From Haliotis cracherodii (taxonomy: Eukaryota): a stretch of 64,000 bases of DNA. The DNA is taken from NCBI RefSeq assembly GCF_022045235.1, contig NW_027266275.1, positions 71,858,001-71,922,000 on the forward strand. The letters are read 5' to 3'. The position numbers and the translations under genes are program-made. Positions 5,207 to 41,971 of this stretch are shown here, in pieces (the first letter of the stretch is position 1; each line of letters opens with the position of its first letter). The notes under the pieces are model-generated. The model did no database searches, was not told the origin of the DNA, and worked only from the letters and a program-made list of their open reading frames with translations.

Positions 5207-6457
5207 TCAAAAATATGCTATCTTAAGGAAACCAATCAAAGTTGTTATGATGAACAGCATGAAAAACAAACAAAAGAAAAGTTTGTTCATCATTCTGCTA
5301 ACTCGCTTCCAGGTCACTGATGGGGGATTCCATGAGTCCTTTGACATCCTTTCCTGTGTCAGGGTCTCCTGGTTTCCGACTGCAGGGGTGCCAAAGATGC
5401 ATCTTTCCCAGGCCCTTATTATACGACCCATCCATGAAGGAACAGGCCTGATGGCAGCGTCTCGATAAAACACCTGTGTGATCCAGATGGTCAGAAACAC
5501 GTAGATAGAGCTCATTACAAATTGGCCAACAATGAAGATAGTAAATACAGGTAAGGTGTCACCGTTCTGAGGCAGCAGTCCAGTGACGAAGGTCAGGGAT
5601 ACCATGAAAGACAGCAGCACTGTGATGGCAAAGGACAGCTTCTCTCCAGACTCCACAGGGATGAGGAACACCACCACATTGACTAATGCCAGCATCATGA
5701 CAGGCAGCAGAATTGTCAGTATAACTAGGGAGGACTTTCTCTTCAGTGTCATTTTGAAGTTTATAAATGGGTGAGGCATGTCGCTGGTTTCAAGGACAAC
5801 TCTTTGCGCAGATGTGTAAATAATATCCCATTGGCTGTTAGCGTTAAACAGGTCTAATCCTATAGAGTTATTGATCGGTTTTAAATCCACTTCTTTTAAG
5901 GTATTTCCCCAATCAAACGTACTGTAAGTACATTCTTGTTCATCCAAAGGAAAATTGGTAACATCCATTTGGCAGAAAGTCTTGAAGGTATCACCAGGTG
6001 CCCAATTCACAATTCCATTGGCTGTCACTTTCATGATCCCGAAGTCGAGTCCCAGGGGTTCAACACTATCCACGACGTTGTTAATAGTGATGTAAGGTCT
6101 CCACACCATCCCATAGTCAGGACTTATTTCACTGACTCCTCCATACTCGCTGGCGTTCCAAGTTAGGAACTCATCTTTCCAGATAACTAAGAAAAACCCA
6201 TTAGCTGTCACTGTCTGAGTTACTTCATCAAAATCAGACATGCTGAGAAGATAAAGTTGTAATGAGACCGTGATGGTGTCACTGCTATTCTTGACAGGTC
6301 TGACTTTGGGGTTGTTGTTTTTGATGATGTCATTGTGTAGTCGAAGTATATGGTGGTCATCCTGACCTCTAGTGGTCCCCAGTAACAACAATAGGTACAG
6401 TCCACATGTTACTACCTCCAGCCGATGCATCCCTACCTCCGTGTACAGCCGCAACAT
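5207..6457 (-). CDS. Intronless non-canonical nAChR-like Cys-loop ligand-gated ion channel subunit (subfamily A, locus 1)
   Basis: 416-aa uninterrupted ORF (alternative ATG at 6430). Signal peptide, Cys-loop CQMDVTNFPLDEQEC, M1-M3 with GEKLSFAITVLLS, short intracellular loop, MA/M4 WKRVSRMMNKLFF. No loop-C CC. Confidence 0.95.
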   Translation of the reverse strand: MLRLYTEVGMHRLEVVTCGLYLLLLLGTTRGQDDHHILRLHNDIIKNNNPKVRPVKNSSDTITVSLQLYLLSMSDFDEVTQTVTANGFFLVIWKDEFLTWNASEYGGVSEISPDYGMVWRPYITINNVVDSVEPLGLDFGIMKVTANGIVNWAPGDTFKTFCQMDVTNFPLDEQECTYSTFDWGNTLKEVDLKPINNSIGLDLFNANSQWDIIYTSAQRVVLETSDMPHPFINFKMTLKRKSSLVILTILLPVMMLALVNVVVFLIPVESGEKLSFAITVLLSFMVSLTFVTGLLPQNGDTLPVFTIFIVGQFVMSSIYVFLTIWITQVFYRDAAIRPVPSWMGRIIRAWERCIFGTPAVGNQETLTQERMSKDSWNPPSVTWKRVSRMMNKLFFCLFFMLFIITTLIGFLKIAYF

Positions 6458-6983
6458 TTATATTCTCTGTCTGGTACCCGAGATGTCCATTCCACTCTAC
6501 TGGGCGTCAAGCCAGTGGTGGCGAATTATAGTGTCAATCAGCTAAACTGGGTTGTTTTCCGGTTCGCTCACGAAGGTAGTAAATCAAATATGCTTTTACC
6601 CGTTTATTGTTTGAATTGTAAACGCCATTAACTAAAATGTTTCACTGTTTGCATTTGTGTAATTCTATCATCAACCATTATGTGAATACTACGTGATACA
6701 CACTAGGAAGCCCACGTATGTACATTCACTTGATTGCATTATTAACGGCAGAATTTTATGTCCTTGTGCCGATCATATAACAAAATGTGGTCATTAATTC
6801 CTACAAAGAACAACAAACAGAGAACTACAGCTATGTGTCAGTGATATATTAATGCATTGACGACTTCGGAAACATGTGAATATGTAGTAATTGAAAACGT
6901 GACTGTTATTAATAATGAGGTCATTAATTGTAACAAGCACATTTAGATCAATAAAGGGACTCTTTTTCTTCTTTGTAGTGCAA

Positions 6984-7374
6984 GACCACCTCCGTGGTCT
7001 AGTGGTAGAGCGTCCGCCCGTTGAGCGGAAGTTCCTTGGTTCGATCCCCGGCCGCATCATACCAAAAGACGTTAAAAGATGGTACTTGTTGTAACCCTGT
7101 CTGGCGCTCGACATTAAGGGGCTAAAACAAGGACTGGTCGGCTCGGAGTCAGTATACTGTGTCTGAGTTGGGTATTCATCTTAAACTGTGGCATGGTATC
7201 TCAGTCTGCAAGCGCTATAAATCGGCATCAGTCCGGACTACTACAAGCAGCCACACACACACATACACACGTGCATGCACGTCGCTATATAACTGCAATA
7301 ATCTTGGACGCCACGTTAAACCCCACCTCACCTCACCTCACCTCACCTCACCTCACCTCACCTCACCTCACCTC
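6984..7374 (+). mobile_element. Full-length tRNA-derived SINE (MetaSINE-like core) with (CACCT)n tail
   Basis: A box TGGTCTAGTGG, B box GGTTCGATCCC, core ATACCAAAAGACGTTAAAAGATGGTACTTG. TSD TGTAGTGCA at 6974-6982 and 7375-7383. Near-identical copy at 26884. Confidence 0.9.
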
Positions 7375-7579
7375 TGTAGTGCATTGTCCCCTCACACTGA
7401 TCATATTTGTAATTAATCACCAACAATAAAAGGTATTATTTCCATCCGGCCCTTTTTGTATCATGCCTGCATCCTTCCAATATAGTCTTATGTCACATTA
7501 TAGGTTCACTGAGCTGTGTAATCGAGATAACCTGATATAGCATATCTGAATTAAAATAGTTCCATTATGATTATTTGCT

Positions 7580-8560
7580 GATAAGACCATTGTACGATTC
7601 CGACTATAAAGAGGAAGAAGAAATTCAGGATAGTGACACCCTCAAACGAAGAATCATGTCAGATAATAGATACCACCACCCTCGCTCTTCTCTCAATCGC
7701 TTATATTTACCAATTATAATGGGAGGGCGTGTTTTGATTAACGTTGAGGCTCTACGTGGTAGAATTGTATTGTGCACTTTTGCACACATTTATTTGTCTG
7801 ACGATCTTGTGAAATGTGTCAAGACTCATGATGAAAACAAGGCATTCCGTAGTTTTCTTAAACAAGCCAAGAATGTGGGACCTAATCTCAATGTCAATGT
7901 TGACTTTGCTGATAGTTCTGTGTCAACCAAGTGAAGTGCCATATCAAATCGAACGACCACTACAACGCGTTTATGTGCAGTGTGTTCAGAAGAAAGGAAC
8001 CCTGCAAAGTCTTCGCTTTGATTAAGTCGGCTGACCTGAAAAGTGAAACCGTATGCTTTCTGTTTGCTGCCCAGGACCACTGGAAACTGTCAGTGTGTGA
8101 TTTTGCATCAAAATGTAATGCATCACATTGTCAGTGGATGCCCAAACACAAACACAGTATCTTACGCGACAGGGTGGAAACAGATGTCCATCCATTGAAC
8201 GACCCAGATAATGTAGAGACTCAAGGAAAATGATAAATACAAAATTCTTTGGAATAGGTCCGTATACAGCCTCAGACCTAGCCAGGCCAACAAGCTGATC
8301 TTGTCCTTTTTGTTAAATCCAATGAAATAATCTATATCATTGAATTTTCCGTCCCTTTTGACACTATTGTGATTGACAAGATTGAGGGAAAACATGGCAA
8401 ATATCCAGGCCTCGCTTTCAAAATGTCACGCTTGCATCCCAAGTGCCAAGTTGTCCGACTCCCCATTGTTCTCGGTGCCTTAGGTTTGGTAATTCCCGAA
8501 CTGTTGATACACATTGGGAGAGTACCCGGGTTGGCTACCAGGAATACAGTCCAACTGAAT
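7580..8560 (+). mobile_element. Degenerate RLE-type (R4/Dong-like) non-LTR retrotransposon, 3' portion
   Basis: HHPRSSLNRLYLPIIMGGRVL (compare HHPKADVDRLYLPRKEGGRGL), ETVCFLFAAQD, KILWNR..IIEFSVPFDT..KHGKY..RLPIVLGALG restriction-like endonuclease motifs; frameshifted. Confidence 0.8.
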
Positions 8561-8741
8561 CAGGCTTTGGCAGATAATCGAGACTGATGTACATCCAGCG
8601 TTGACGTTTTCAATAATACAAAGAACCGCACATGTCAAAAAACAGGATTTACTTCGCAATGGAAACATAAATACATATGTGCATCCTGTCGATACAGTCA
8701 AGACGGATCCCTCTTTGGAAATAACAAATGTGACCAACCAG

Positions 8742-9158
8742 GAGAAAAGGGACCTTGTGGGTGCTAGGATACAATTGCAGTGACGTCATTAAGAGGGACA
8801 TTTGACGTCAACTTACTTCCGTAAAAAAATGGCCATGTGTGAGGACTGTACAAAAACATCTAACTTTTCTCTTGTTAGTTCGTAATATAATAAAACCTTA
8901 TTTCACAAAATTTTAGCATACACGTCCTACTTTCAATTAATCAGGGAGTATATTTAAAAAGTGCAATTATTACATAAAGAGTTTCATAAACTATTTTAAA
9001 TTGGACTTTGCAGAAAATGAGTCCAAAGTTTATGCAATGTATTCCTTTACTAAATATGAACTGAAGCTTGTGATTTTTTTTGTGTTCCTAAGATACTGTA
9101 GTTTTTAAATATAATGAGAAGTCAAAATGTGATTTTTCACCCAAAAGGTTCATTTCTC
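8742..9158. mobile_element. Possible MITE
   Basis: Imperfect inverted termini GAGAAAAGGGACCTTGTGGGTG (8742) and CACCCAAAAGGTTCATTTCTC (9138-9158); non-coding interior. Confidence 0.4.
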
Positions 9159-10846
9159 ACCCAAAAGGTCTCATAGTTGACTACAAATATTTAAAAATAT
9201 GCAGATACAACAATCTCAATTACGTTACTACAAACACATGGCTTCATCAGCCTAATGTTATTCTATCGATACTTGCGCCTGAGTAACAAATACATCTCCC
9301 CTGAACCGTGCATAACATCATTGTGATCTTGTTTCACCTAACCACTGACTAATGTCTGAAATCACAAACTGAGTACGAAGAAAAACAACATATTTGGTGT
9401 AAAGCACTACATCCATAATGTTTCTATCCCGCGTTTATGTGAGTTTGCACGAGTACATCATTTTGGAGTTTTTGTTTTTGTTTTTGTTTCGTTTCGTTTC
9501 GTTTCGTTTTATCCCACTCGTGATATTGTTGAACTAATGCTAAAGTCGGCTCAAAAAAATATTCATTAGCTCACTCACTCATTCAATCATTCTTGGACGG
9601 TGATTGGACAATCTGATTCTCAGAATATGTCTTAATCAGTCACTCAAAAATCAGATGTTTCTTCACAGAAATTATCTTACTCAGTTTGGACGATATAAAT
9701 GAAATTGAATACGTGTTTTACCTTGATAACTCATCTCGCATCTGCCTTCTGATTCGTTAAGTTTGCTACACATGGAATTTCTGCTGTTGGGACAGACACA
9801 TGTGGGTAATTGATTTATGGTGAATGTTATATTCTGTGGAATTTAACATTATAGATGACTGATGTGAGAAATTAGTGTTGTATAAGGATATTGCAGGTGT
9901 CAAATGACTGGTTGATTGTTTACCTGGCAAATATCGGCCTCGGCGTTCTGTATGTACTTAATGATATGTACTTGTCTCTCTCAGTGTCATGTATCAACTC
10001 TAACTACTGAATAAACGTTCATTATAGTATTAGCCATTTGCCAATATTTAACAATGGCTTGGGTGTAATGATTTTCGGAACTTTCCAAGAATACGCTGAT
10101 GTGAGTTCAGTGCACAGTATATCTCCAACCTAGTTAGTCTCGGATGAATGTGGGTGTAGTGTACTGAACACTCTCTGCAAAGGTAGCAGAACCTTTTGGG
10201 GAGATAATAATGCATGTATTAATTGTACCTCACATACTTCTCCACAATTTATCCGGACCATGTGATGAATTAACTATGTAAGTGCGCATATTTGGATGAG
10301 TTTATCCTGATAAATTGCCTCCTGAATGTGTCATGTTATCAACTGAAAAAACAACATCGACATGAATAATATAAATCAAATCTCACGAGGTCAACGATGA
10401 TGGAAGCCAAAACAAGCACAGAATTGGAGATATTTCTACTGACAGATCAATCTTTTTCAGAAAAAGAATCTGATCGTATCTCAATGTTTCATAATATCTT
10501 TCGGTTTGGCATCGTTGGTGTTAAACGTTAACACAAGTACATTATCAGAACAACAGGGGAATGTAAGCTTTCCAACATCGTCTAACTTTGGTGACTGTGA
10601 CCGAGGATGCATTGTTACGGCGACAACGACGACCCCTGAAACGGGAGTCATCACTTTACCTTGGAGTCTGGAGATGTAAAACGGTTGTGATGCTACAAAC
10701 CCATGCACGTGTCAATGAAAAGGATATACTACGTAATGGAAACATAATACATATACAATACAAGACACGTTCACTCATCAATAGCAACATTATTCCACCT
10801 AAATTAATACGACCATCAACATACAGTAACGCTGTCATGTGGGGAG

Positions 10847-10995
10847 TGAGTGAGTGAGTGAATGAGTATGGTTTTACGCCGCTTTTAGCAATATTCCAGC
10901 AACGGCTTCACACACTGTACCCATGTCGGGAATTGAACCCGGGTCTTCGGCGTGACGAGCGAACGCTTTAACAACTAGGCTACCCGATCGCCCCG
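10847..10995 (-). mobile_element. Short tRNA(Asp-like)-derived SINE with (CACT)n tail
   Basis: Minus strand GGGGCGATCGGGTAGCCTAGTTGTTAAAGCGTTCGCTCGTCACGCCGAAGACCCGGGTTCAATTCCC...GCTGGAATATTGCTAAAAGCGGCGTAAAACC. Further copies at 25178, 50620 and 55560. Confidence 0.85.
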
Positions 10996-11242
10996 TCTGT
11001 CATATGGATACACAAAGCCAATGTTATACTATTAATTTGATACTTCAGCAGGCATAGCACATCCATGAAGGCACGGATACATTAGAATTACACATGAGTA
11101 TATTATGGGTTTATCAATACGAATATTGTTTAACCGACATATATGTAATACATATGTCACATACGAGAAAGGGTTTCTCAATACAAATACTATATATATT
11201 AATCAAATGGACCAATAAATAGAGTACCTGCCAAGATAGGGG

Positions 11243-11510
11243 AAGGTCGGCGGTTCGATCCCCCGCCGCGTCATTTCAAAAGACAACACGGTTAAAAGAC
11301 GTAATTCTGTTGCTACCATGCCTGGATCTCAGTATTAAGGGGATTAAAACAAGGACTGGACGATTCGGAGTTAGTATACTGTGTCTGAGTGGGGTATCCA
11401 TGTTAATCTGCAGGATGATATCTCAATTGGTTAGCACTACAAAACCGGCGTAAATACGGGCTAGCACAAGCAGTCAGACACACACGTGCATGCACGTCGC
11501 TATGTAAGTG
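11243..11510 (+). mobile_element. 5'-truncated, diverged MetaSINE-like copy
   Basis: Colinear similarity to 7035-7290. Confidence 0.75.
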
Positions 11511-11713
11511 CCAATATATCAATACAATTGCAAAGCCACAGATACCAAATATAGAGAAATATAGTTAACAAATGAATGCATCGATAGAAGTGCACATCAG
11601 TACGGGAATAGACAGCACGTTGAACTGCCAACAGATACCGTCTAGCGGGCCTTTTCTGACCTGGAATCAATACGTTAGAGACGAAACGTCAAAGAAAGAC
11701 AAAGTGCTAAATA

Positions 11714-11907
11714 NNNNNNNNNNNNNNNNNNNNNNNNNNNNNNNNNNNNNNNNNNNNNNNNNNNNNNNNNNNNNNNNNNNNNNNNNNNNNNNNNNNNNNN
11801 NNNNNNNNNNNNNNNNNNNNNNNNNNNNNNNNNNNNNNNNNNNNNNNNNNNNNNNNNNNNNNNNNNNNNNNNNNNNNNNNNNNNNNNNNNNNNNNNNNNN
11901 NNNNNNN
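11714..11907. other. Assembly gap
   Basis: Run of N. Confidence 1.
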
Positions 11908-13469
11908 CTGAGAAAGAAACCAAGGTAAAGCATTAAAGGGGTTTGTCGGACACCTCCCGCTATCCCTCACTAGGTGACGTGAGTAGATTTGCTAGCTAAC
12001 GCAACCGAGCGTGACAATAGACTGGGCTACCGTCTTTAAGGACAGCGTAAATAAACTTTGAGGCAATCTTCTATAAGTATTTCTGAACACTGATTGCTTA
12101 CCGTGATCTATGAAGATTTCGATATTACAAAGGGGACATGTTAATCAATTTCTTCAACCTAAACAAACAGACAAAAAGAACGCTTGGAGCTGACAAGGTG
12201 TCATTACTAGTATTTGGAAATACCCTGAAAGTATCCTCGCGGTAAAAGCGTTTTCGGATTTCGTATTGTGCGGATAATACGATTGCTAGTTCCTTGTTGC
12301 CATCCATGTTTCCTGGCATAATCCTACACCTGTATCTTTGTTATCATTCACTTGATGCTCAGTTAATGAATTCATTACAGGTATATAAGTGGTAGCACCA
12401 CTCAGATTACCTGACAGGTTCCCATTTGGCATTGTTTGTGTCTGGGGTAATTATTCAATTAAATCGGGGTCTGAAGTGGGGTGAAATGTATGTTATGTAA
12501 TTTGCAAGATCAAAAAACAATCATCGAAGGTCAATACTTTATACTTTTATTGATTCATCTCTGTTATCTTGCACAATGGATAGATCAAAACTCCGTGTTT
12601 ACATGTGTGGGTTGACTAAAGCAGATGGAAAACACACATATCTAAGTGCCGATGTAAATTGACAAGCTTTGTGTAAACATATCATAAGCATTAAAAGATA
12701 TGCATTTGAAGGACGTTATGATTAAGTATTTACTTTGGTTGTGTTATATGTCAGCGTATGATATTGTTTAACAATGATTGTAAGGGATACATTGCAATCA
12801 TTCTCACGGGCACAGCTGACACGAGTAGAATGATGTTTCAACAGAGAATGTATCATCTCTTCATTGAATGGGAACTTGTCAGCTTGCATAATATAATTGT
12901 TTTAGTCAGACACTTTAAGTGATAACGTTAATGAAGTCACAGGAGCACTAATTATAATTACAAGTGTATCAGCATGTGTGAAAATATAGCAAATATAAAT
13001 AGAGAACACAAGAGAACAACCAGTGTCAAACATCCGCCGAAACAGATTCAATCGGGCGAAAAGGGCAGCCAATAGTTAACATGGTGGACACATGCATGAT
13101 CATCTTGTTTTAGTACAGGTACTATCTGTTTATAAATAATAGTTGATTTTCTGAAGCATATTAACATTTGAAGATGCCTTTATTTTCAAATGATTCGTCG
13201 CCCAATGAAATGCTCACATTTTAAAACCTTAAATATCAGCCTCTAATACACCTAAAAATAAAGGTTTGATGAACGTCATGATTAAGTATTTACTTTGGGA
13301 TTAAGTTCTGAAAATCCGGTTATCGCATGTAATTTCTACTGTAGCTTAGTTTATTTCAAACGAAAGAAAAGTCCCGCTTTTGGTACTAAATACAAATCGA
13401 TGCCTGTCAAAAATATGTAAGTGTTGCCGAAACAATTTTATTAGTTAGACATAATTTCATAATCGATGG

Positions 13470-13745: not shown

Positions 13746-14072
13746 AACATTGATCAGCGACTGGCAGTCCATCAGAACCCTATTAGGAAACTGGTCTCAT
13801 GGGTGCACTTACACATGGATCAAAGATTATTCTATGAATGTTAATGTTTCTCGTGGTTATTGTCATTACAGGTACAACATATTGAAATGTGTACACACAA
13901 TAGAGCATTCCATTATCCAAACTGTAGTTATGCTTGCATCAACACATCATCATTAATGGGAACCACTGTATATATACAGATCTTGTTTATTATTCATCAC
14001 TTGTATCAATATCATCCAGGCTTGCACATCATGAGACAGACGACGTTTACGTGTATGCTATGTCTAACTGGG

Positions 14073-15314
14073 ATGTACAAGAAACAAGAAGGATTTCCCT
14101 TGAATTTGAAACTTCATGGGTTGTGTTTTCTGTTCTTGCTGTTAACTGTCAAGGGTCAAGATGACCATCATATACATCAACTACACAATGACATCATCAA
14201 AAACAACAACCCAAAGGTAAGACCTGTCAAGAACAGCAGTGATGCTGTCACGGTCTCATTACAACTTCATCTTCTTAGCATGTCCGATTTTGATGACGTG
14301 ACTCAGACAGTAACAGCTAATGGGTTTTTCTTTGTGACCTGGAAAGATGAGTTCCTAACTTGGAACGCCAGCAAGTATGGAGGAGTCGGTGAAATAAGTC
14401 CTGACTATGGGATGGTGTGGAGACCTTACATCACTATTCGTAACGTCGTGGATAGTGTTGAACCCCTGGGACTCGACTTCGGAATCATTAAAGTGACAGC
14501 CAATGGAATTGTGACTTGGTTCCCTGGCGATACCTTCAAGACTTTCTGCCTAATGGATGTTACTAACTTTCCTTTGGATGAACAGATGTGTACTTACATT
14601 ACGTTAGATTGGGGACATAGTCTAGATGAAATTGATTTAAAACCGATCAATAATTCTATAGAGTTATCGTTCTTTAACCCTAACAGCCAATGGGATATCA
14701 TTGACTCATCTGCTCAGAGAGTGGTCCTTGAATACATCGGCAAATCATCTTCACTTATAAACTTCAATATGACACTGAAGAGAAAGCCATCCCTGGTGAT
14801 ACTGACAATTCTCCTGCCTGTCTTGATGCTGGGATTAGTGAATGTGATGGTGTTCCTCATTCCTGTGGATTCCGGGGAGAAGCTGTCCTTTGCCATCACA
14901 GTGCTGCTGTCTTTCACGGTATCGCTGTCTTTCGTCGCTGGACTGCTGCCTCAGAATGCTGACAGTATACCCGTATTTACTATCTTTATTATTGGCCTGT
15001 TTTTAACTAGCTCTATCTACGTGTTTCTGACCATCTGGATCGTGCAAGTGTTCTATCGGGACGCTGCCATCAGGCCTGTTCCCTCCTGGATAGGGCGTAT
15101 AACAAGTGCCTGGGAGAGATGCTTCTGTGGCACTCCTGCTGTTGGAAACCAGGAGACGGTGCCACAGGAAAGGATGTCGAAGGAATCATGGAATCCCCCA
15201 TCAATGACCTGGATGCGAGTCAGCAGACTGGCTGACAGTGTTTTCTTTTGTTTCTTTCTCTCGCTGTTCATCATGACAACAGTGATTGGTTTTCTTAAGA
15301 TAGCACATTTCTAA
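14073..15314 (+). CDS. Intronless non-canonical nAChR-like Cys-loop subunit (subfamily A, locus 2)
   Basis: Open frame. ATG 14073 (MYKKQEG..LCFLFLLLTVKG-QDD) gives 413 aa with a signal peptide. Cys-loop CLMDVTNFPLDEQMC, GEKLSFAITVLLS, four TMs, no loop-C CC. The frame is also open upstream to 13860, so the start is not certain. Confidence 0.95.
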   Translation: MYKKQEGFPLNLKLHGLCFLFLLLTVKGQDDHHIHQLHNDIIKNNNPKVRPVKNSSDAVTVSLQLHLLSMSDFDDVTQTVTANGFFFVTWKDEFLTWNASKYGGVGEISPDYGMVWRPYITIRNVVDSVEPLGLDFGIIKVTANGIVTWFPGDTFKTFCLMDVTNFPLDEQMCTYITLDWGHSLDEIDLKPINNSIELSFFNPNSQWDIIDSSAQRVVLEYIGKSSSLINFNMTLKRKPSLVILTILLPVLMLGLVNVMVFLIPVDSGEKLSFAITVLLSFTVSLSFVAGLLPQNADSIPVFTIFIIGLFLTSSIYVFLTIWIVQVFYRDAAIRPVPSWIGRITSAWERCFCGTPAVGNQETVPQERMSKESWNPPSMTWMRVSRLADSVFFCFFLSLFIMTTVIGFLKIAHF

Positions 15315-15414
15315 CATGCCAAAGACATGTAAACCCAGTAAACTGAATGGCACACATCCTTGTAATAATAAGAACCTAATCATATTTGTATTGACGCATC
15401 CATATGTCACATAC

Positions 15415-15960
15415 TCAGTGTGTTACACATCTATCACTGTCTTCTGTAGATGTATCAGTGTGTTATATATTCAAGACTGTGTCTTCTGTTAAAGTATCGG
15501 TGTATAACATATCCATCACTGTCTTCTGTTGATGTATCACTGTGTTATATATTCAAGACTGTGTCTTCTGTTGAAGTATCAGTGTGTTACATATCCATCA
15601 CTGTCTTCTGTAGATGTATCATTGTGTTATATATTCAAGACTGTGTCTTCTGTTGGAGTATCAGTGTGTTACATATCCATCGCTGTCTTCTGTTGAAGTA
15701 TCAGTGCGTTACACATTCAAGACTGTGTCTTCTGTTGAAGTATCGGCGTATAACATATCCATCACTGTCTTCTGTTGAAGTATCAGTGTGTTACACATTC
15801 AAGACTGGGTCGTCTGTTGAAGTATCAGTGTGTTACATAGTCAAAACAGTGTCCTCTGTTGACGTGTGCTTCATATTCAATGATTAGTAGTATGTTGACG
15901 TTTCAGTGTGTCACATGTCTTCTGTTGACCTATCATTGTCTTACATATTCAACATTGTGT
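15415..15960. repeat. Minisatellite of alternating ~40/42-bp units just 3' of locus 2
   Basis: GTATCAGTGTGTTATATATTCAAGACTGTGTCTTCTGTTGAA alternates with GTATCGGTGTATAACATATCCATCACTGTCTTCTGTTGAT. Confidence 0.9.
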
Positions 15961-16034
15961 CGCGTGTTGACATTTACATTTGATACCATGTTCATTCTGT
16001 CTCCTGTATCTCATGCTTTTCGTAATGGGGAAAA

Positions 16035-20130: not shown

Positions 20131-20137
20131 TAGCTGT

Positions 20138-20292
20138 NNNNNNNNNNNNNNNNNNNNNNNNNNNNNNNNNNNNNNNNNNNNNNNNNNNNNNNNNNNNNNN
20201 NNNNNNNNNNNNNNNNNNNNNNNNNNNNNNNNNNNNNNNNNNNNNNNNNNNNNNNNNNNNNNNNNNNNNNNNNNNNNNNNNNNNNNNNNNNN
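20138..20292. other. Assembly gap
   Basis: Run of N. Confidence 1.
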
Positions 20293-21200: not shown

Positions 21201-22299
21201 CAAATTTAAAGGGATTATGTTGGTATGAAGTCTACCTGTAATGTCAGGAGGCCAGAATATGACATTGGAGATGACAGTCTCATAGTAAGAAGAGTCAATA
21301 TTTACTTCTATGGTGAAGGTCTCAGATGTGTCGTAATGGCGTCATGTGTTCATATGCAATTTTAATAGTAAAGCTCTATGCTAGTTTATACTCTTATCTC
21401 TGCCCCATGAACCTGTGTGAGGGAGGGTTGTGTTACATCTCAGTTACCGCCATCACAGAATTCCTCACCGTAGCATGTATTCAAGTCTCTATCAGACACC
21501 TAAGATATATCAGGAGCAGTGATTCACGCCGTTGTAGGTAAGATGCCAAAACGTCCGCCTTTGACACATAGTAACTAGATCTACCCTGGACGTGAACAAA
21601 GACACTGAACTATGTCCCCGAAGCATTCACATTGCATGGTTGCATTTCAGGATATCGATTAGCTTCTATTCAGTAGGCATGTGGGCCATATTGACATTCA
21701 CTCTAGGACTAATGTATCTATCAGCTTCAATTCAGTACGTAGTATGTGTGAGAGAGAAAAATACATAAAGAAATACAGAATGTTGGAGGCGCTTTCTGAT
21801 CAGTCATTACATTTGATAGGTCTCAGAAGAGTAGAGCTACAGTTTGTTTGGAGCAAAATGACACAGGTGAATCGTTAATGTCCTCAGAATGAAGTAAAAG
21901 TCAATAGAACCTTCGAAGCAAACTATTACCAAGAATGTGAACTTTAAATGTTTGGATTCAAATATTGTTACCCTGGAAGCGTTATTGGCCTAAAAATATG
22001 ACTGAAAATCAGGAGCGTTTTCTTAAAGGAACTTACCTTCGGCAAAATAGAATTTCCTTTTTCGACTTACACAATAAATGTATTCATTTACATGATATAA
22101 CCATGACATATCCATTCTTAAGAAATGAACTTTTGTTAAGTTATGTATGGCCTTTGCCATTTGCTGTTATCAACTCAACCTAACATACATAAAATTTGAA
22201 AATATACTCTTAGTATCATAGAGCTCTACAGCTTTAAGCATCAAATGGCAAATGTCCTACTGTTACATTAAAAGTGATAAATTGTTATAGGATTGATAT

Positions 22300-24083: not shown

Positions 24084-24540
24084 TACTACGATAGATGGTC
24101 TCACTGGGACCTAAACACATAGCACGTGGAGTGACTACAATAGATGGTCTTACTGGAACCTAAACACATAGCACGTGAAGTGACTACAATAGATGGTCTT
24201 ACTGGGACCTAAACACATAGCACGTGAAGTGACTACAATAGATGGTCTTACTGGGACCCAAACACATAGCATGTGAAGTGACTACAATAGATGGTCTTAC
24301 TGGGACCTAAACACATAGCACGTGAAGTGACTACAATAGATGGTCTTACTGGGACCCAAACACATAGCATGTGAAGTGACTACAATAGATGGTCTTACTG
24401 GGACCTAAACACATAGCCCGTGAAGTGACTACAATAGATGGTCTCACTGGGGCCTAAACACATAGCCCGTGAAGTGACTACAATATATGGTCTTACTGGT
24501 ACCTAAACACATAGCCGGTGAAACGGCTACAATAGATAGA
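24084..24540. repeat. 49-bp minisatellite, about 9 copies
   Basis: GACTACAATAGATGGTCTTACTGGGACCTAAACACATAGCACGTGAAGT (copies at 24133, 24182 and onward). Confidence 0.95.
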
Positions 24541-28695: not shown

Positions 28696-28759
28696 TGTAA
28701 TATAAACTATACTGAACAACAAAAGTTCCTGTGACATTGAATAAGATTTAATGCAAAGT

Positions 28760-31070: not shown

Positions 31071-31777
31071 CTTTCTGTTCAGTCCTGGTAGTAACACTTC
31101 AGTCTTGTACCCACATCACCCTTGCTGTTCAGTCCTGGTAGTAACACTTCAGTCTTGTACCCACTTCACCCTTGCTGTTCAGTCCTGGTAGTAACACTTC
31201 CGTCTTGTACCCACATCACCCTTGCTGTTCAGTCCTGGTAGTAACACTTCAGTCTTGTACCCACATCACCCTTTCTGTTCAGTCCTGGTAGTAACACTTC
31301 AGTCTTGTACCCACCTTACCCTTGCTGTTCAGTCCTGGTAGTAACACTTCAGTCTTGTACCCACATCACCCTTGCTGTTCAGTCCTGGTAGTAACACTTC
31401 AGTCTTGTACCCACATCACCCTTGCTGTTCAGTCCTGGTAGTAACACTTCCGTCTTGTACCCACATCACCCTTGCGGTTCAGTCCTTGTAGTAACACTTC
31501 AGTCTTGTACCCACATCACCCTTGCTGTTCTGTCCTGGTAGTAACACTTCAGTCTTGTACACACATCACCCTTGCTGTTCAGTCCTGGTAGTAACACTTC
31601 AGTCTTGTACCCACATCACCCTTGCTGTTCAGTCCTGGTAGTAACACTTCAGTCTTGTACCCACATCACCCTTGCTGTTAAATCCTGATAGTAACACTTC
31701 AGTCTTGTACCCACTTCACCCTTGCTGTTCAGTCCTGGTAGTAACACTTCAGTCTTGTACCCACTTCACCCTTGCTG
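31071..31777. repeat. 50-bp minisatellite, about 14 copies
   Basis: CTTGCTGTTCAGTCCTGGTAGTAACACTTCAGTCTTGTACCCACATCACC repeated. Confidence 0.97.
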
Positions 31778-32445: not shown

Positions 32446-33699
32446 TTACTTATATATCTTGAACACAGTGACAGCCATCAGTGACACGACGAGGAGGAGG
32501 AATAACCAGAAAAAGAATTTGTCCATGGCTTCACTCACTCTTTTCCATTGCACTTCACGTCTGGGAAGCCTTTCACTTCCTCGCGTTGACTTGTCAATGT
32601 ACCCACTAGGAGATATGTCCGACACATCCTGACCCCCGGTTGTGTGTATCCTGTTGCTGCCACAACATCCCTTCTGACCGCCCAGCAGTCTATGCACCCA
32701 GAGTGGAACGGGCCACTTGTTAGAGTCTCTATGGAATACCTTGATGACCCAGATAGTAAGCAGCACATAGAGAGAGCTCAAGAGGAACAGTCCAGCCATG
32801 AGAAGGGTGAATATTGACAGGCTGTCAGCACTTTGGGGCAGCATGTTGGTGATGAAGGACATGAAAACAGCAAATGACAGCAGCACTGTGATGGAGAAGG
32901 ACAGTTTCTCCCCCGACTGCACTGGGATGAGGAACACGACGATGTTGAGGAAGGAAAGAAGCAGGACAGGCATCACGACAGTCAGGATCTTCATGGACGG
33001 TTTCCTCGTCAGCTGGAGATGGTAGGTGATGTGGGCGATCTGAAAGAATGACACAAATTGTGTGTGTCGAGTGGCCGAGGTGTTGGTGATGTCCCACTCG
33101 CTGTTCACATTGTAAATGTCGAGACCAATGGAGTTGTCGACTGGGAATAGATCAACGGTGTCGATGGTGTCAGCCCAAACGAAAATATTAAAGGAACATG
33201 TCTGAACGTCGAAGGGGAACTTGGTTACATCCATTTTACAACTTGTCTTGAATGTGTCTCCAGGATACCAGGTTAGGCTTCCAGTGAAGAAGAGAACCAA
33301 GATGCCAAAATCAAGGCCCAAAGGCTTCATCTTGTCCACCGTGTTCTGCACCGCTACCCTCGGCTTCCATACCCGATCAAACGCTGGCCTGATGTCCGTC
33401 ACACCGCCATATAGAGTTGGGTTCCATGTCAGGATTTCATCATCCCATGTGACCTCCATGTAACCGGTGGAAGCTAGAGCCTCTGAGACTTCACCAAACT
33501 CTGTAATAGCCACAAGGTTAAAGGTGATGGAGACTTGGGTCACATGTGTTTTGTTACGAACAGGGCGGATGTTCGGGTTGTTAGACTCGATGATGTCACT
33601 GTAGAGTTTCTGCTGAAGGATGTAGTCATCAACACAGTCACCGACCCCAGTTATTGCCAGCAGTGTAGCAACCAAATGTATCCAAATGTCTTCTCGCAT
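32446..33699 (-). CDS. Intronless non-canonical nAChR-like Cys-loop subunit (subfamily B, locus 5)
   Basis: Open ORF. Likely start MREDIWIHL.. at 33699 (upstream ATG at 33729). Cys-loop CKMDVTKFPFDVQTC, GEKLSFSITVLLS, four TMs; loop C TRHTQFVSFFQIAH lacks CC. Confidence 0.95.
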   Translation of the reverse strand: MREDIWIHLVATLLAITGVGDCVDDYILQQKLYSDIIESNNPNIRPVRNKTHVTQVSITFNLVAITEFGEVSEALASTGYMEVTWDDEILTWNPTLYGGVTDIRPAFDRVWKPRVAVQNTVDKMKPLGLDFGILVLFFTGSLTWYPGDTFKTSCKMDVTKFPFDVQTCSFNIFVWADTIDTVDLFPVDNSIGLDIYNVNSEWDITNTSATRHTQFVSFFQIAHITYHLQLTRKPSMKILTVVMPVLLLSFLNIVVFLIPVQSGEKLSFSITVLLSFAVFMSFITNMLPQSADSLSIFTLLMAGLFLLSSLYVLLTIWVIKVFHRDSNKWPVPLWVHRLLGGQKGCCGSNRIHTTGGQDVSDISPSGYIDKSTRGSERLPRREVQWKRVSEAMDKFFFWLFLLLVVSLMAVTVFKIYK

Positions 33700-34760
33700 A
33701 ATTTTGAAACGGATGAATCGCAAACACATGCGTGATAGATCTATAGCTGTGTCATAATGTGTGTTGTGATAATTTCAGCTATAGTTCACCGGTCCTCTGT
33801 AGACTTCTCGATGGTAGCACTGTGAAATCATTGACCATGCGTGTCTGTTTATGGTTATAACGATCAACTAAAGAATCCTGCCACTCCCATTTCCACTATT
33901 TAATATAAGAAGTAAATCTTCCTTTTCCAGAAAACGATTGATGACAGATATATACATTCAATATGTTGATAGTAAAGAGCTGCTTCCATCTTGACACAAT
34001 GACAATGACATTTTTAGCCTTTAAAACATTCCAGCGATTATTCGTTCGATGTTTGGACTTGTTTTACTTCTGTGGTAACAAATGAATTTCGATTACCAAT
34101 AATTGATCAGGAGCTGAGATATCACTCTGCGACTCCATGGTTACATACATGCTAAAAGAGTAACTGAGGGGTTTTAGAATAGGATCACATGACAGATCTC
34201 TATGTTTTCAATAATGTGAAAACATACCAACATTACTTGCTCCGTAGGAACACAAGACTGTAATCCAACCTTTACAAATCCTCCAACACCAATACAATGG
34301 TATCTCCCTGATGTTAATATCTATCCAAGCATTAAACTTTTCTTCCACAAAAGAAGGTAAGCAATTTATTTGAGCTATGTGCCAACTGTACTTCGATTAT
34401 ATATAACATGGCTAATGATTATTGGATCAGTATAGGACGAATGTATTTTCCCCTGCTGTTAATGTCTTCATGAAAGCAAATATCTCTCCACTGGTAGCCA
34501 AGCAAACCACTGACATATTTGTTCCTGGGAGTGTTAACACCAATGATAATCCATTCATTCCTACTCCGACTGTCGTTTTACCAAGCCACTTATTAATGTG
34601 TTTTGCACATGGTGGATTTTGAAAATGAACATTCCGATGGAGTTTTCTTCTCAGGAAAAAAAGCACTTAAAGCATACACCTCTATTGCTGTCACCCTCGC
34701 GAACTGTTGTGCATCTCTACTGGGGAATGAGAATAGCCATTAAGTGTTTAGTAAACTACC

Positions 34761-35160: not shown

Positions 35161-35607
35161 CAGAATCACAATTCCATCTGCTGTCACTTTAATGATCCCG
35201 AAGTCGAGTCCCAGAGGTTCAACACCATCTTCCATATTACGAACAGTTATGTTAGATCTCCACACCATCCCATAGTTTGGACTTATTTCACTGACTCCTC
35301 CATACTCGCTGGCGTTCCAAGTTAGGAACTCATCTTTCCAGAAAACTAAGAAAAACCCATTAGCTGTCACTGTCTGAGTCACTCCATCAAAATCAGACAT
35401 GCTGAGAAGATTAAGTTGTAACGAGACCGTGATAGTGGTACTGCTGTTCTTGACAGGTCTGACTTTTGGGTTATTGTTTTTTATGATGTCATTGTGTAGT
35501 CGAAGTATATGATGGTCATCTTGACCATTGACATTTAACAGTAAGAACAACAAACACAACCCATGAAGTTTCAAATTCAGGGGAAATCCTTCTTTTTTCT
35601 TGTACAT
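35146..35607 (-). pseudogene. 5'-half nAChR-like gene fragment (subfamily A, locus 6)
   Basis: ATG 35607 MYKKKEG.., signal peptide and ECD to KVTADGIV, then runs into unrelated repeat sequence before the Cys-loop. Confidence 0.85.
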
Positions 35608-35878
35608 CCGAGCTGCAAACAGCGTACACGTACACGTCATATGTTTCATGATGTGCAATCCTGGATGACATTGATACAAGTGACGAATGATAAACAGGAG
35701 CTGTGTTTATACAGTGGCTACCATTAATTTTGGTGTGTTGATGCAAACATAACCACAGTGTGGATAATGGCATGATCTATTTGTGTTGCTAATTTCTATG
35801 CCAAATGCTTCATGTTATACTTGTTCAATGACAATAGCCATGACAAACACAATATCCATAGCATAGACAATAGAGGAT

Positions 35879-36278
35879 AGACAATATGTGAAACCATCAA
35901 AAGTTTCGAAATTGTGATGACAGTTATCAGATATATTCACGTGATTGAGAAGTAGAGTTTGCTTATTTCAACACATGCGTATGTTGGACTTATAACACTA
36001 CATTGATACATGTATACATTGAGTTAAAATCGCAAAGGCAGATTTTAGAAATTTTAAGGAAGCTTATTTTAAGATGTGATCCAATCTGATTCTATGTGAT
36101 GTCGATAGAAACGGTTAAGATATTGACTGCAGAGGACTTGGGTCACGGATAGATTTGACCATTTTATCACATTTGATACTGTTCATATCATTATTGCAAT
36201 GTGTTCCACATATTATTAATTGTGACATGTATTATAAAAGGGGTATCTTGAAACAGGCTTCATTCAGCTCCCATTGAG
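35879..36278. repeat. ~400-bp direct repeat, copy 2
   Basis: Near-identical to 34761-35160. Confidence 0.95.
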
Positions 36279-36863
36279 GATTGGCTGCACATTCCACAGT
36301 GCCAGACTCCATAAGCCGGATGCTCAGACAATGCTGGAATAAGGTGCTATACCAGGGTATTAAACATCAGTAGCGGTTATAAGAAGATAGGGAAAATATT
36401 TGCAACATGATCTTCAATAGTAAATTTTGAATGAAGATTCACAGTAGATATTGTTGTAGACGACCACTTAGTGCTAAGATCACTATAGAATGGGTCCCAA
36501 TGTGTTAACAGCCAACACGGGAGATTGTTCATAAAGTGGTTGAATTTTATTCAATAATACAGCCAGCAAGGTGTTAGTGATCAAGGTTAAGGATAAGTGC
36601 TCCAGAATCAACATGGTAACATATGGAAACTTCAACAGAAGACACAGTCTTGAATATGTGACACATGGATACATCAACAAACTACTAAGTATTGAATATG
36701 CAACAGAAGAGACAGTTTTGAATATGTAACACACACCGACATCACCAGAAGACACAGTGATGAATATGTAACACACTGAAAAGAAGATACAGGGGTGAGT
36801 ATGTGACATATGGAAATGGAAAAGTGTATCATTCAGTTTACTAGTTTACAGGTCTTTGGCGTG

Positions 36864-37696
36864 TTAGAAATGTGCTATCTTAAGAAAACCAATCACTGTT
36901 GCTATGATGAACAGCGAGAGAAGGAAACAAAAGAAAACACTGTAAGCCAGTCTGCTGATCTGCATCCATGTCATTGATGGGGGATTCCATGATTCCTTTG
37001 ACATCCTTTCCTGTGTCAGGGTCTCCTGGTTTCCAACAGCAGGAGTGCCACAAAAGCATCCCTTCCAGGCCCTTGTTATACACCCCACCCAGGAGGGAAC
37101 AGGTCTGATGGCAGCGTCTCGATGAAACACCTGCACGATCCAGATGGTCAGAAACACATAGATAGAGCTCATTACAAACAGGCCAATAATAAAGATAGTA
37201 AATACGGGTATACTGTCAGCATTCAGAGGCAGCAGTCCAGTGACGAAAGACAGGGTTACCGTGAAAGACAGCAGCACTGTGATGGCGAAGGATGTCGAGT
37301 CGAGGTTCAACACCATCTACCATATTACGAACAGTTATGTAAGTTCTCCACACCATCCCATAGTCTTGACTTATTTCACTGACTCCTCCATACTCGCTGG
37401 CGTTCCAAGTTAGGAACTCATCTTTCCAGAAAACTAAGAAAAACCCATTAGCTGTCACTGTCTGAGTCACTCCATCAAAATCGGACATGCTGAGAAGATT
37501 AAGTTGTAACGAGACCGTGATAGTGGTACTGCTGTTCTTGACAGGTCTGACTTTTGGGTTGGTTTTTTTTCATGATGTCATTGTGTAGTCGAAGTATATG
37601 ATGGTCATCCTGACCATTGGCATTCAACAGTAAGAACAGCAAACACAACCCCTGAAGTTTCAAATTCAGGGGAAATCCTTCTTTTTCCTAGTACAT
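36864..37696 (-). pseudogene. nAChR-like pseudogene (subfamily A, locus 7) with a large internal deletion
   Basis: ATG-TAC-TAG nonsense at codon 3; +1 frameshift in the A-run at ~37563-37570; junction at ~37293 joins GVEP.LD directly to SFAITVLLS (about 408 nt missing relative to locus 2, 14478-14885); intact M2-M4 and KIAHF-stop. Confidence 0.92.
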
Positions 37697-39219
37697 CCGA
37701 GCTGCACACAGCGTACACGTAAACGCCACATGTTTCATGATGTGCAAGTCTGGATGACATTGATACAAGTGACGAATGATAAACAGGAGCTGTGTTTATA
37801 CAGTGGTTCCCATTAATTTGGTGTGTTGATGCAAACATACCTGCAGTTTGGATAATGGCATGATCTATTTGTGTTACAATTTGTGTTTCTATGCCAAATG
37901 CTTTATGTTATACCTGTTTAATGACAATAGCCATGACAAACACCAAAATCCATAGCATAGTGTTTAACCCATGCGTGAATGCGCCCATGAGACCAATTTC
38001 CTCATAGGGTTCTGATGGACTGCAAGTCGCTGATCAATATTCCCACATTGTTCCATGAAAGGAGAATAACAGTTAATGACGTAACGCCTTGATGTGCAGT
38101 GAGTAAATTGAGGAGTTGTTAATATTTAATTACAGGTTTGGTTTGGCTCGGCTTTCGGGTGGCTTTGTGTTAGCGTTGCGCGGCGTGACGTGACAATAAC
38201 AAAGTTTGACCGGCTGCACCAGAAGTTAACTGGTAAGTTGATCACCAGACTGATTTTGAAATAATGTCTGATCAAATGGTTAAGGCAACAACTGAATATT
38301 TTTGTCAGGCATCGATTGATTTTAGTACCAAAAGTTTGACTTTACTGTTTTTAAAACAAACTTAGCTGCAGTAGAAAATGTAAGCAATGATCGGATTTTC
38401 CGAAGTTAAAACCAAAGTAAATACTTAATCATAACGTATATCAAACGCTGACATTCTGATTTTCAGAAGTTACCAATCAATATTACAAAGTTACAACTGT
38501 CGATTCCCAAATTGAAACAATATGTCAATCAAGAAATCTGTACAAAAAAACAATGTGTGTGAAACCAACACATCACCCACAAGTGGTACACAATCAACAA
38601 TTCATTACAAAATTCACTAAGTTTACAAATTAGCACAAATTACTGCACAGCATTCATAATGGCAGTAAACAATAGAGTGGTAGTACAATATACAATGGCA
38701 ATGAATACTATGATGGCAGTGGTCAGTGGTCAAATACCAAAATACGGTGGTGATAGCGATAGTCAGTGATGATAATGCATATTCACCCAGGGGTGACTGG
38801 TCAACCTTCCGAGATGGGTAAGAAGGGGAATCAGGGATGATGAGCGATCCTCACACGAAGGCTGCTCTTGACATGATGAAAATGCGTGTATGTCCCGCAA
38901 AGAGAAATTTTCATATGTTTCTATAACATACTCTCACCGTCTGCAGTTTACGGACCGGATGTTTTCACACCCCACTAGCCAAGTTTCTTCCCAGCGCGTG
39001 ACACATTCGTTACACTCTCTGCAAACACGCTATCGTTGTAAGGAGCTTGCACACTAGCATCTTAAAATAGTAACTTACTGACGACTGCTTACATTTCCTA
39101 AATACATTGCAATGAGCATCTACCGAATCTCAACAGAAACAACGTAACGCCGTTAAAATCGTTGTTAAACAATAAAATACACTGCCATATGACATAACCA
39201 AAGTAAATACAGAGGCCTT

Positions 39220-40300
39220 GATTGTTGTCACCCTGATCAAATATCTTGGACAAGAGTCTTATGATGAGCCTCGACATCTTCAAAGAAGGAGCAAGCTTGA
39301 TGGCACCTCAAAAGTTGTGAAGTGTAAACACAAAGGTCAGGAGCTGCAGGAATATTGATCGACTTAAAGGGCAAGTTGTCAATTGGAATGTTATACAGCA
39401 TTGTTTTTTTCGTCACTCTGAATCTTTATGCGTAGATCTTAATATAAAACACATTTTATATGTTGCCAATACGTGCAAAAAACTATCTGAAAACGAAACA
39501 TATAAGCGAAAAAGGGCGCAAAATTTCTTCCCTTGGGGATGTCTACTTTTTGCCTGCATGTACTATTCCCCAAATGTCACATGGATGTTATCAATGAGGA
39601 AGTCCATCATTTCATGTATTGTTTTCTCAGTAAATGTAGAAGATATTTGCTTTCAGTTTTGACAACTCGTCCTCAGGGGCAGTGGCGTACTTCAAAGAAA
39701 ACAGTCAAATGTTTTGACACATTTGAACTTCTTATCTTTTTCTGAGATTACAAACATTCAGGCACATCCTTCTTTTTTACTCAAATATTTCCCGTGAGTA
39801 TACAGAAACACATTTATTGAATGTCTTAATTATCATGGTTAATTGATGAAACAGTACTTTGGAATCCATTACAACAGAAGAATGGACGAACTTGTCAGTG
39901 TTTGGGGTTTGACTAATGCTATGCCTGAATTCGAAAAAACAACACTTACAGTATCTTCTTATGTTGCCTAATTGATGAAAAAACATGCTGTTTCATGTCA
40001 TTGAGGCTGAACAAATGAACAAATGAAACTCCATTGCTACGTTTGTAACAAAAACATCTTTTAAAAACAGAAATGGTCCTTCGCTTGTATTTAGCATTGG
40101 AATCAACTACCAAAGAGCTGTCTCCAGGTTTTAGAGTCAAGCCAAAAGTCGATAGTACCGATGCATGGTTTGGGAAAAGTTGTTCCTAATACGTTACTAG
40201 CCTTACACGGGGCATAGTTTGATACCAAGTTCTGTTCTTAATCAATGGTTTTATAACTTGAGGCTGGAACACAATGAATATATTTAAATTCTCTGTTTGA
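39220..40300 (-). mobile_element. Highly decayed Penelope-like (Naiad-type) RT
   Basis: LIDNIHVTFG..KVDIPKGRNFAPFFA (~39490-39600) and NIPAAPDLCVYTSQLLR (~39300-39360); 5' limit approximate. Confidence 0.65.
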
Positions 40301-40717
40301 AGAGGACCCCTAACATCTGGTTCGGAATGGCACGGGAAGAGTGCACCAGGTGCGCTTCGCTCTCAAGTAAAGAAGGGGACATCGGCGACCCACTTCTCGA
40401 TCTTGGGACATACCTTCATCACGAAACAACTCAGTGCGTACTCCTACACCTGTTCCAGCGTCACAACCCAAAGCTAAGGTTGACACCCAAGAACAATTCA
40501 AATGATAAGCTCTGCTTTATTACATATATTCTGATTTTTAGCGATATTAGAAACCCCTAGATTTAACACAATAGTATCATTACTGTTGTCATTGTTTGTA
40601 GGTACTTAACACTTGCATTATTGACCTTTCTTGTTTCAGTATAAAGATGTCCATATAACTTCCATGTGAAACCTGATCCATTATTGATCATATTCTCCAG
40701 GTGATGGTCTAATTTCA

Positions 40718-41971
40718 TTACAGACATATCTTGAACACAGTGACGGCCATCAGTGACACGACAAGCAGGAGGAATAACCAGAAAAAGAATTTGTCCATGG
40801 CTTCACTCACTCTTATCCATTGCACCTCACTTCCGGGCAGCCTTTCACTTCCTCGCGTTGACTTGTCAATGTCCCCACTAGGAGATATGTCCGACACATC
40901 CTGACCCCCGGTTGTGTGTATCCTGTTGCTGCCACAACATCCCTTCTGCCCGCCCAGCAGTCTACACACACAGAGTGGAACAGCCTGCTTGCTAGAGTCT
41001 CTATAGAATACCTTGATGACCCAGATAGTAAGCAGCACATAGAGAGAGCTCAAGAGGAACAGCCCAGCCATGAGAAGGGTGAATACTGACAGGCTGTCAG
41101 CACTTTGGGGCAGCATGTTGGTGATGAAGGACATGAAAACAGCAAATGACAGCAGCACTGTGATGGAGAAGGACAGCTTCTCCCCCGACTGCACTGGGAT
41201 GAGGAACACGACGATGTTGAGGAAGGAAAGAAGCAGGACAGGCATCACGACAGTCAGGATCTTCATGGACGGTTTCCTCGTCAGCTGGAGATGGTAGGTG
41301 ATGTGGGCGATCTCGGAGAAAGATGCATATCTTGTGTGTCGAGTGGCTGAGGTGTTGGTGATGTCCCACTCGCTGTTCACATTGTAAATGTCGAGACCAA
41401 TGGAGTTGTCGACTGGGAAGAGATCAACGGTGTCGATGGTGTCAGCCCAAACGAAAATATTAAAGGAACATGTCTGAACGTCGAAGGGGAACTTGGTTAC
41501 ATCCATTTTACAACTTGTCTTGAATGTGTCTCCAGGATACCAGGTTAGGCTTCCAGTGAAGAAGAGAACCAGGATGCCAAAATCCAGGCCCAAAGGCTTC
41601 ATCTTGTCCACCGTGTTCTGCACCGCTACCCTAGGCTTCCATACCTGATCAAATGCTGGCCTCATGTCCGTCACACCGCCATATAGAGTTGGGTTCCATG
41701 TCAGGATTTCATCATCCCATGTGACCTCCATGTAACCGGTGGAAGCTAGAGCCTCTGAGACTTCATCAAACTCTGTAATAGCCACAAGGTTAAAGGTGAT
41801 GGAGACTCGGGTCACATGTGTTTTGTTACGAACAGGGCGGATGTTCGGGTTGTTAGACTCGATGATGTCACTGTAGAGTTTCTGCTGAAGAATGTAGTCA
41901 TCAACACAGTCACTGACCCCGGTGACTGCCAGCAATATAACAACCAAATATATCCTGTCGTGTCGGATCAT
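40718..41971 (-). CDS. Intronless non-canonical nAChR-like Cys-loop subunit (subfamily B, locus 8)
   Basis: 417-aa ORF with signal peptide, Cys-loop, GEK-M2 and four TMs; close paralogue of locus 5; loop C TRHTRYASFSEIAH. Confidence 0.95.
   Translation of the reverse strand: MIRHDRIYLVVILLAVTGVSDCVDDYILQQKLYSDIIESNNPNIRPVRNKTHVTRVSITFNLVAITEFDEVSEALASTGYMEVTWDDEILTWNPTLYGGVTDMRPAFDQVWKPRVAVQNTVDKMKPLGLDFGILVLFFTGSLTWYPGDTFKTSCKMDVTKFPFDVQTCSFNIFVWADTIDTVDLFPVDNSIGLDIYNVNSEWDITNTSATRHTRYASFSEIAHITYHLQLTRKPSMKILTVVMPVLLLSFLNIVVFLIPVQSGEKLSFSITVLLSFAVFMSFITNMLPQSADSLSVFTLLMAGLFLLSSLYVLLTIWVIKVFYRDSSKQAVPLCVCRLLGGQKGCCGSNRIHTTGGQDVSDISPSGDIDKSTRGSERLPGSEVQWIRVSEAMDKFFFWLFLLLVVSLMAVTVFKICL

Follow-up and report, generated by a model that had tools for sequence, protein, structure and literature searches.

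The closest described systems to the locus reported here are the massive and largely intronless tandem expansions of nicotinic acetylcholine receptor (nAChR) genes in molluscs, in which arrays reach up to 12 genes, gene fragments lie among the genes and the principal binding sites are mostly non-conserved (Jiao et al., 2019; PMC6896357). In the same work, oyster expanded nAChR genes were reported in development, immune and stress responses, and intron-poor oyster nAChRs were more often found with no or low expression. A recent preprint (MolluscaGenes, 2026; PMC13174522) distinguishes 15 molluscan nAChR clades, including the chemotactile receptors (CRs) and a 'CR-like' clade, the latter with gastropods, and proposes divergent gastropod nAChR clades as possible ionotropic chemosensors; the defining properties of the cephalopod CRs have also been summarized (PMC11526382). 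Both the intronless tandem expansion in molluscs and the chemosensory hypothesis are therefore already published. In this study, an array of Cys-loop receptor genes was analyzed in a 64,000-nucleotide stretch of the genome of the black abalone, Haliotis cracherodii (assembly GCF_022045235.1, contig NW_027266275.1, positions 71,858,001 to 71,922,000), which is referred to as the window and to which all coordinates refer unless another contig is named. The locus is very likely a Haliotis tandem array of orphan pentameric cation-channel subunits of alpha7-like nicotinic descent, forming part of the molluscan intronless expansion.

Judged from gene structure and translations, the array belongs to the expansion described in PMC6896357, with which it shares single-exon genes, tandem arrangement with fragments, lineage-specific duplicates, a degenerate principal site and a cation-type second membrane helix (M2). 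The published analysis is bivalve-centred, whereas the abalone array is a Haliotis-restricted clade with two subfamilies; it adds a loop C that is specific to each paralogue and conserved across species. The cephalopod CRs, such as CRT1 and CRB1, are likewise nAChR-derived, intronless and clustered, have lost the acetylcholine residues and vary mainly around the pocket. They form pentameric cation channels for which sensory expression and hydrophobic agonists have been shown.

Intact genes and their predicted products

Receptor loci were located by open reading frame (ORF) listing, Pfam and tblastn over the window, and eight single-exon Cys-loop loci with PF02931/PF02932 were found, four intact and four broken. 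Subfamily A is represented by A1 (5207..6457, minus strand, 416 aa) and, in the opposite orientation, A2 (14073..15314, plus strand, 413 aa, or 427 aa in the public gene call, which begins at 14031), and subfamily B by B1 (32446..33729, minus strand, a 427-aa ORF, or 417 aa from the Met at 33699) and B2 (40718..41971, minus strand, 417 aa). Each intact gene is one complete ORF from signal peptide to stop, and the lengths match the public gene models. PF02931 (1e-39 to 1e-41; 1e-40 for A1) and PF02932 score above cut-off in all four.

When 30 kb of left flank and 10 kb of right flank were added, tblastn and ORF searches revealed a further pair of intact A-type genes, A0a and A0b (413 aa each, 96.9% mutual identity), together with two C-terminal fragments, 4-17 kb upstream of the left edge of the window. 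The whole array thus comprises 12 loci, six of them intact, over ~59 kb, with its left end at window coordinate -17037; no further receptor loci were found in these flanks. A first-pass annotation of the window had described eight single-exon paralogous loci, four intact and four disabled, in two subfamilies of a non-cephalopod mollusc. Its positions, its subfamilies and its guess at the host agree with the present searches, but its count was incomplete, since the array extends 17 kb further to the left.

The residues of the intact genes were checked against human alpha7 and, in a 54-sequence alignment, against fish alpha7. All six intact genes contain the C-x13-C Cys-loop with FPLD or FPFD, the Gly-Glu-Lys motif and the Leu at 9'. 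SGEK spans positions -3' to 0' of M2, giving a cation-type pore with Glu at -1', and the coupling elements are also retained, namely the Cys-loop FPxD, the pre-M1 Arg and the M2-M3 prolines. Within the aromatic box for acetylcholine, the Trp of loop B is the sole survivor as a set: W55 of loop D is replaced by F in subfamily A and by Y in subfamily B, Y93 of loop A by N, R or Q, Y188 by T, A or V (still Y in A2) and Y195 by H, I or S (still Y in A0a). The vicinal Cys pair C190/C191 is replaced by TS, NN, IG or SF, and a direct scan of the loop-C zone for CC found none. Furthermore, WxPD has become WRPY in subfamily A and WKPR in subfamily B, and the 20' Glu of alpha7 is Gly or Asn. The first-pass annotation had stated that the Cys-loop spacing, the loop-B Trp and the GEK-M2 motif were kept and the acetylcholine-site residues lost, and each of these residue claims is upheld by the alpha7 alignments.

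By these signatures, the array genes can be assigned to the Cys-loop pentameric ligand-gated channel subunits of the cation-selective nAChR/5-HT3 branch. The two features of an acetylcholine-binding alpha subunit, the vicinal Cys pair and the full aromatic box, are absent from the predicted proteins. The Cys-loop, the loop-B Trp, the SGEK...L9' pore and the gating motifs are shared with vertebrate alpha7, whereas alpha7 has a multi-exon gene, a complete aromatic box, the vicinal Cys pair, the Asp of WxPD, a long intracellular domain (ICD) and a 20' Glu, each of which is missing or altered in the abalone genes. An intact gene encodes a signal peptide, a ligand-binding domain (LBD) of ~210 residues folded as a beta-sandwich with the Cys-loop, four membrane helices (M1-M4) and a short M3-M4 loop, with a predicted alpha7-type pore having Gly-Glu-Lys at -2' to 0' and Leu at 9'. 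The AlphaFold (AF2) model of A1 (mean predicted local distance difference test score, pLDDT, 81) has the nAChR fold with helices M1-M4 and a short M3-M4 loop; it superposes on alpha7 with Z 31.2 and a root-mean-square deviation of 2.1 A, and on beta2 with Z 31.3. The best sequence match among solved structures is alpha7 (1e-49), and matches in the protein atlas are to generic nAChR clusters only.

A Cys-rich motif is conserved right after M3, reading ERCFCG in A0 and A2, ERCIFG in A1 and KGCCG in subfamily B; it is possibly a palmitoylation site.

Selective constraint and loop C

Ratios of non-synonymous to synonymous substitution (dN/dS) were calculated pairwise by the Nei-Gojobori method and counted by region. 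The ratio is 0.28-0.46 for whole genes, 0.09-0.33 for M1-M3 and 0.13-0.28 for the LBD minus loop C; the intact genes are under purifying selection. Same-length orthologues are present in H. rufescens, with identities of 93% for A1 (an alpha-7-like model), 97% for A0, 95% for B1 (P0032) and 97% for B2 (P0021; 13 differences in 417 residues). A2 falls together with H. rufescens XP_046378427 in a cluster of at least 90%, and orthologues of A2 and of the B genes are also found in H. rubra and H. asinina. The H. rufescens orthologues carry the public name 'neuronal acetylcholine receptor subunit alpha-7-like', and the genes of the window are already in public protein collections.

It could be argued that these loci are mostly functionless duplicates on their way to becoming pseudogenes, annotated by homology only; half of them are already broken, the oyster data on intron-poor genes point the same way (PMC6896357), and no transcript of the array turned up in the search of sequencing runs described below. 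However, low dN/dS, far below 1 and with the pore helices most constrained, combined with intact orthologues of the same length in H. rufescens and, for A2 and B, others in H. rubra and H. asinina, is a pattern unlike that of decaying copies and makes this explanation highly improbable.

The subunits of the putative channels differ from one another mainly in loop C. In subfamily A (19 sequences), entropy is 1.85 in loop C and 1.23 in the flanks of loop B, compared with ~0.7 in loops E/F, 0.18 in the Cys-loop and 0.14 in M2. In four paralogue pairs, non-synonymous differences are denser in loop C than elsewhere in the LBD (Fisher P 1e-5 to 3e-4). Between paralogues, 16 of 45 loop-C positions differ, compared with 17 of 586 elsewhere; between H. 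cracherodii and H. rufescens orthologues, the corresponding figures are 4 of 75 and 30 of 977. A loop C that is kept across species and yet specific to each paralogue speaks for functional receptors whose binding sites differ from paralogue to paralogue, and a loop fixed between species but variable between paralogues suggests that each paralogue may have a ligand preference of its own.

The B genes provide a particular case. B1 and B2 are ~98% identical in the mature coding sequence, whereas identity falls to 35-70% in the flanks and signal peptides. The loop-C patch of B1 (33033..33092, minus strand) contains nine of the 33 nucleotide differences between B1 and B2 within 19 nt (33042-33060), a clustering with binomial P = 9e-9, and the loop-C type of each gene is common to its own H. 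rufescens orthologue. The simplest reading is that B1 and B2 are old duplicates that have been homogenized by gene conversion, loop C excepted, where the difference would have to persist.

Relatives in the genome and in other animals

The 1.18-Gb assembly was searched with PF02931, yielding 456 candidates, and all 150 of those scored exceeded the cut-off, so that the genome contains at least 150 such matches; most cover the whole domain in one open frame, and they sit in arrays on many contigs. The 40 nearest loci were taken from at least 25 places, and 38 of them are ORFs of 329-535 aa. In the alignment, the vicinal Cys pair and the full aromatic box are missing from all 38 of these single-exon paralogues, and the -1' Glu is retained in 35. 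The genome also contains canonical alpha7-like genes that have YxCC and WxPD; they are split by introns and form multi-copy clusters on contig C1 (64.1-64.3, 70.7-71.1 and 54.5-54.7 Mb). The array is therefore unexceptional, being one of dozens in this genome.

Subfamilies A and B together form a clade restricted to Haliotis (Shimodaira-Hasegawa-like approximate likelihood-ratio support, SH-aLRT, 95), which is nested among genes of Lottia, Patella, Gigantopelta, Pomacea, Littorina and Nucella at 33-39% identity. The ten nearest named clusters are all gastropod. Since the gastropod relatives all lack the Cys pair, its loss is old within gastropods. One-to-one orthologues across molluscs, which the first-pass annotation had named as evidence that would speak against its proposal, were not found outside Haliotis, these gastropod genes being the nearest sequences.

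The relationship to the cephalopod CRs was examined by VIA-align over PDB representatives with the A1 model as the query. Structure-based identity was 27% to octopus CRT1 (290 residues, Z 22.9) and 19% to squid CRB1 (Z 23.6), compared with 28-30% to alpha7, and no CR was among the top 60 PDB sequence matches. Despite the traits in common, the abalone genes are by this comparison no closer to CRT1 or CRB1 than to alpha7, and their nearest sequences are those of gastropods. A further point of comparison is Alpo4 of Alvinella pompejana (PMC10338036), another lophotrochozoan nAChR-like protein without the loop-C Cys pair, which is an orphan that is insensitive to acetylcholine and serotonin. Alpo4 differs in that its key aromatics are kept; its identity to A1 is 25% (Z 26.3), and no tandem family is known for it.

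Functional interpretation

As expected from membership of the family, five subunits would form a cation channel that opens upon binding of a ligand under loop C at the subunit interface. With most of the cation-pi box for acetylcholine lost, an agonist other than acetylcholine is most likely. The paralogues diverge in loops B, C, E and F, and loop C is then constant between species, which would give each paralogue its own ligand preference. The first-pass annotation had proposed receptors tuned to ligands other than acetylcholine; the degenerate site, purifying selection and the paralogue-specific loop C fit such retuning, but the array is not special in this respect.

Several observations weigh against the interpretation of the array as orphan ligand-gated channels with paralogue-specific sites. 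The dN/dS ratio of loop C (omega) is ~1 in the older pairs, which alone is compatible with relaxed constraint, and the youngest pair is the only one in which loop C goes beyond the neutral expectation (five differences observed and 1.4 expected, P = 0.013). Gene conversion lowers divergence outside loop C, so that the loop-C contrast is inflated. Pentamer assembly and gating of the array subunits are themselves presumed from membership of the family. In addition, no sequencing run recorded as RNA and containing a stretch of the array was found. The contigs of run X1, a candidate RNA source, have the same depth over the B1 coding sequence as over the DNA upstream of it and are hence probably DNA. 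Finally, loss of alpha-type residues is normal in the non-alpha subunits of acetylcholine-gated heteromers.

The other transcript searches gave similar results. Run X2 proved to be whole-genome DNA from a related abalone, with a contig carrying a B2-type loop C, and runs X6 and X7 contain short pieces only (90-95%) from paralogues. No Logan-derived members were found in the protein clusters of the array genes, and a literature search gave no usable data on the abalone tissues in which these genes are expressed. Diversifying selection in loop C is not claimed, because the neutral expectation is exceeded in the youngest pair alone.

The loss of alpha-type residues leads to a specific alternative, in which the array encodes non-alpha (structural or complementary) subunits that join a canonical alpha subunit in acetylcholine-gated heteromers, the lost residues reflecting beta-type status and loop C being unconstrained. 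By established definition, a non-alpha subunit is one that lacks the vicinal Cys pair and the loop-C tyrosines; the array genes keep the loop-B Trp and the pore, and the omega of ~1 in loop C of the older pairs would be expected. However, W55, which beta, gamma and delta subunits keep on the complementary face, is F or Y here, and the near-universal Asp of WxPD is Y or R. Furthermore, loop C does not drift between orthologues but is conserved, and loops B, E and F are variable as well. A non-alpha role is accordingly considered quite unlikely.

A second alternative concerns the site of action. The array genes might be peripheral ionotropic chemoreceptors, a gastropod counterpart of the CRs that would be expressed in larval sensory cells or in the tentacles, epipodium, osphradium or foot and would respond to environmental compounds, for example algal, biofilm or settlement cues. 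The intronless and clustered genes, the loss of the acetylcholine box and the variation in the orthosteric loops parallel the CR traits (PMC11526382), and ionotropic chemosensors have already been proposed in gastropods (PMC13174522). However, the same traits occur in well over a hundred genes of this genome, the oyster expanded genes were reported in development, immune and stress responses (PMC6896357), and the structure-based comparison gave no specific likeness to CRT1 or CRB1. Neither an RNA run with a stretch of the array nor tissue data in the literature came out of the searches described above. A chemosensory role of the array is speculation by analogy with the CRs, and such peripheral chemoreceptors, although conceivable, seem rather unlikely.

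A bolder version may be put forward, and it is an unlikely one: gastropods, including abalone, may independently have made intronless alpha7-derived channels into peripheral chemoreceptors, with a loop-C cassette protected from conversion setting the ligand, such as algal, biofilm or settlement cues. If this were true, the 'taste by touch' solution of cephalopods would have arisen twice. Were the channels gated by environmental or settlement cues, they would constitute a gastropod class of ionotropic chemoreceptors with a bearing on the receptors for abalone settlement inducers. As orphan channel subunits of nicotinic descent, which is how the genes are read here, they add one further documented case of molluscan nAChR-like expansion, and their modest value lies in providing a compact test set: six intact paralogues, divergent chiefly in loop C, whose orthologues are known from a second abalone species.

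Array turnover and broken loci

Four loci of the window, all on the minus strand, are broken. L3 (22294..23352) is an old pseudogene with ~70% DNA identity to the A genes, in which the N-terminus is gone, seven in-frame stops are present and GEK has become WEK. L4 (28766..29686) is an A-like pseudogene without a signal peptide, with an in-frame TGA at 29146-29144; its homology stops after M3, without ICD or M4. L6 (35119..35607) is an A2-like N-terminal fragment of codons 1-168 with TGA at its end, and L7 (36867..37696) is an A2-like pseudogene that is frameshifted near codon 45 and has lost codons 132-268 from its interior.

Recent duplication is visible at two scales. Self-blastn identified a ~10.2-kb segmental duplication between window coordinates -18446 and 1401, with 84-93% DNA identity and with an intact A0 gene and a C-terminal receptor fragment in each copy; the right end of the second copy lies in the window itself (1..1401). 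On a smaller scale, the N-terminal parts of L6 and L7 belong to a 93% DNA repeat (35200-37960) with an offset of ~2092 bp. In the genomic DNA of the related abalone (run X2), a contig skips from 35589 to 37682, i.e. 2092 bp, and thereby joins the duplicated N-terminal parts of L6 and L7. This skip is a copy-number difference consistent with unequal crossing-over in the array. Both old and recent duplications are visible in the tree of Haliotis family members. The first-pass annotation had postulated birth-and-death turnover, and the pseudogenes, the duplications of different age in the tree and the 2.09-kb copy-number difference bear this out. The array would have grown by segmental duplication and shrunk by truncation and decay, with gene conversion homogenizing the remaining coding sequence.

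A dispersed pseudogene copy of the array family, L005 (G000:C45:14098000-14101300), has six stops and is closest to L4. It shares ~300 bp of the 5' flank of L4; since this flank is kept, L005 was relocated as DNA and did not arise by retroposition as a processed copy.

Assembly gaps and neighbouring elements

Two assembly gaps fall between loci of the array. The first (11714..11907) is intergenic between A1 and A2, where the closest receptor homology ends at 6457 and restarts at 13860, and the second (20138..20292) is intergenic between A2 and L3, where it ends at 15314 and restarts at 22294. Both are 1.9-5.3 kb from the closest receptor homology and neither interrupts a gene; an extra array copy could be hidden inside either of them. 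The third run of N in the window (63211-63343) is outside the eight-locus span.

Several repeats accompany the array. A large inverted or foldback structure with tandem units of ~201-416 bp is present just upstream of B2 (42878-45520), and a satellite with units of 42/82 bp lies directly downstream of A2 (15415-15862). Other satellites are found at 24085-24537 (49 bp x 9), 31071-31777 (50 bp x 14), 57768-60388 (52 bp x 50, with strong negative GC skew) and, at the end of the window, 63399-63998 (38 bp x 16). A remnant of a Tc1/mariner-type transposase (HTH_Tnp_Tc3_2, 3.5e-12) is located at 47456-47824 on the minus strand. Downstream of the array, exons of a multi-exon CUB-CUB-trypsin serine protease occupy 52000-56300 on the minus strand (Pfam CUB 1e-25 twice, Trypsin 1e-15).

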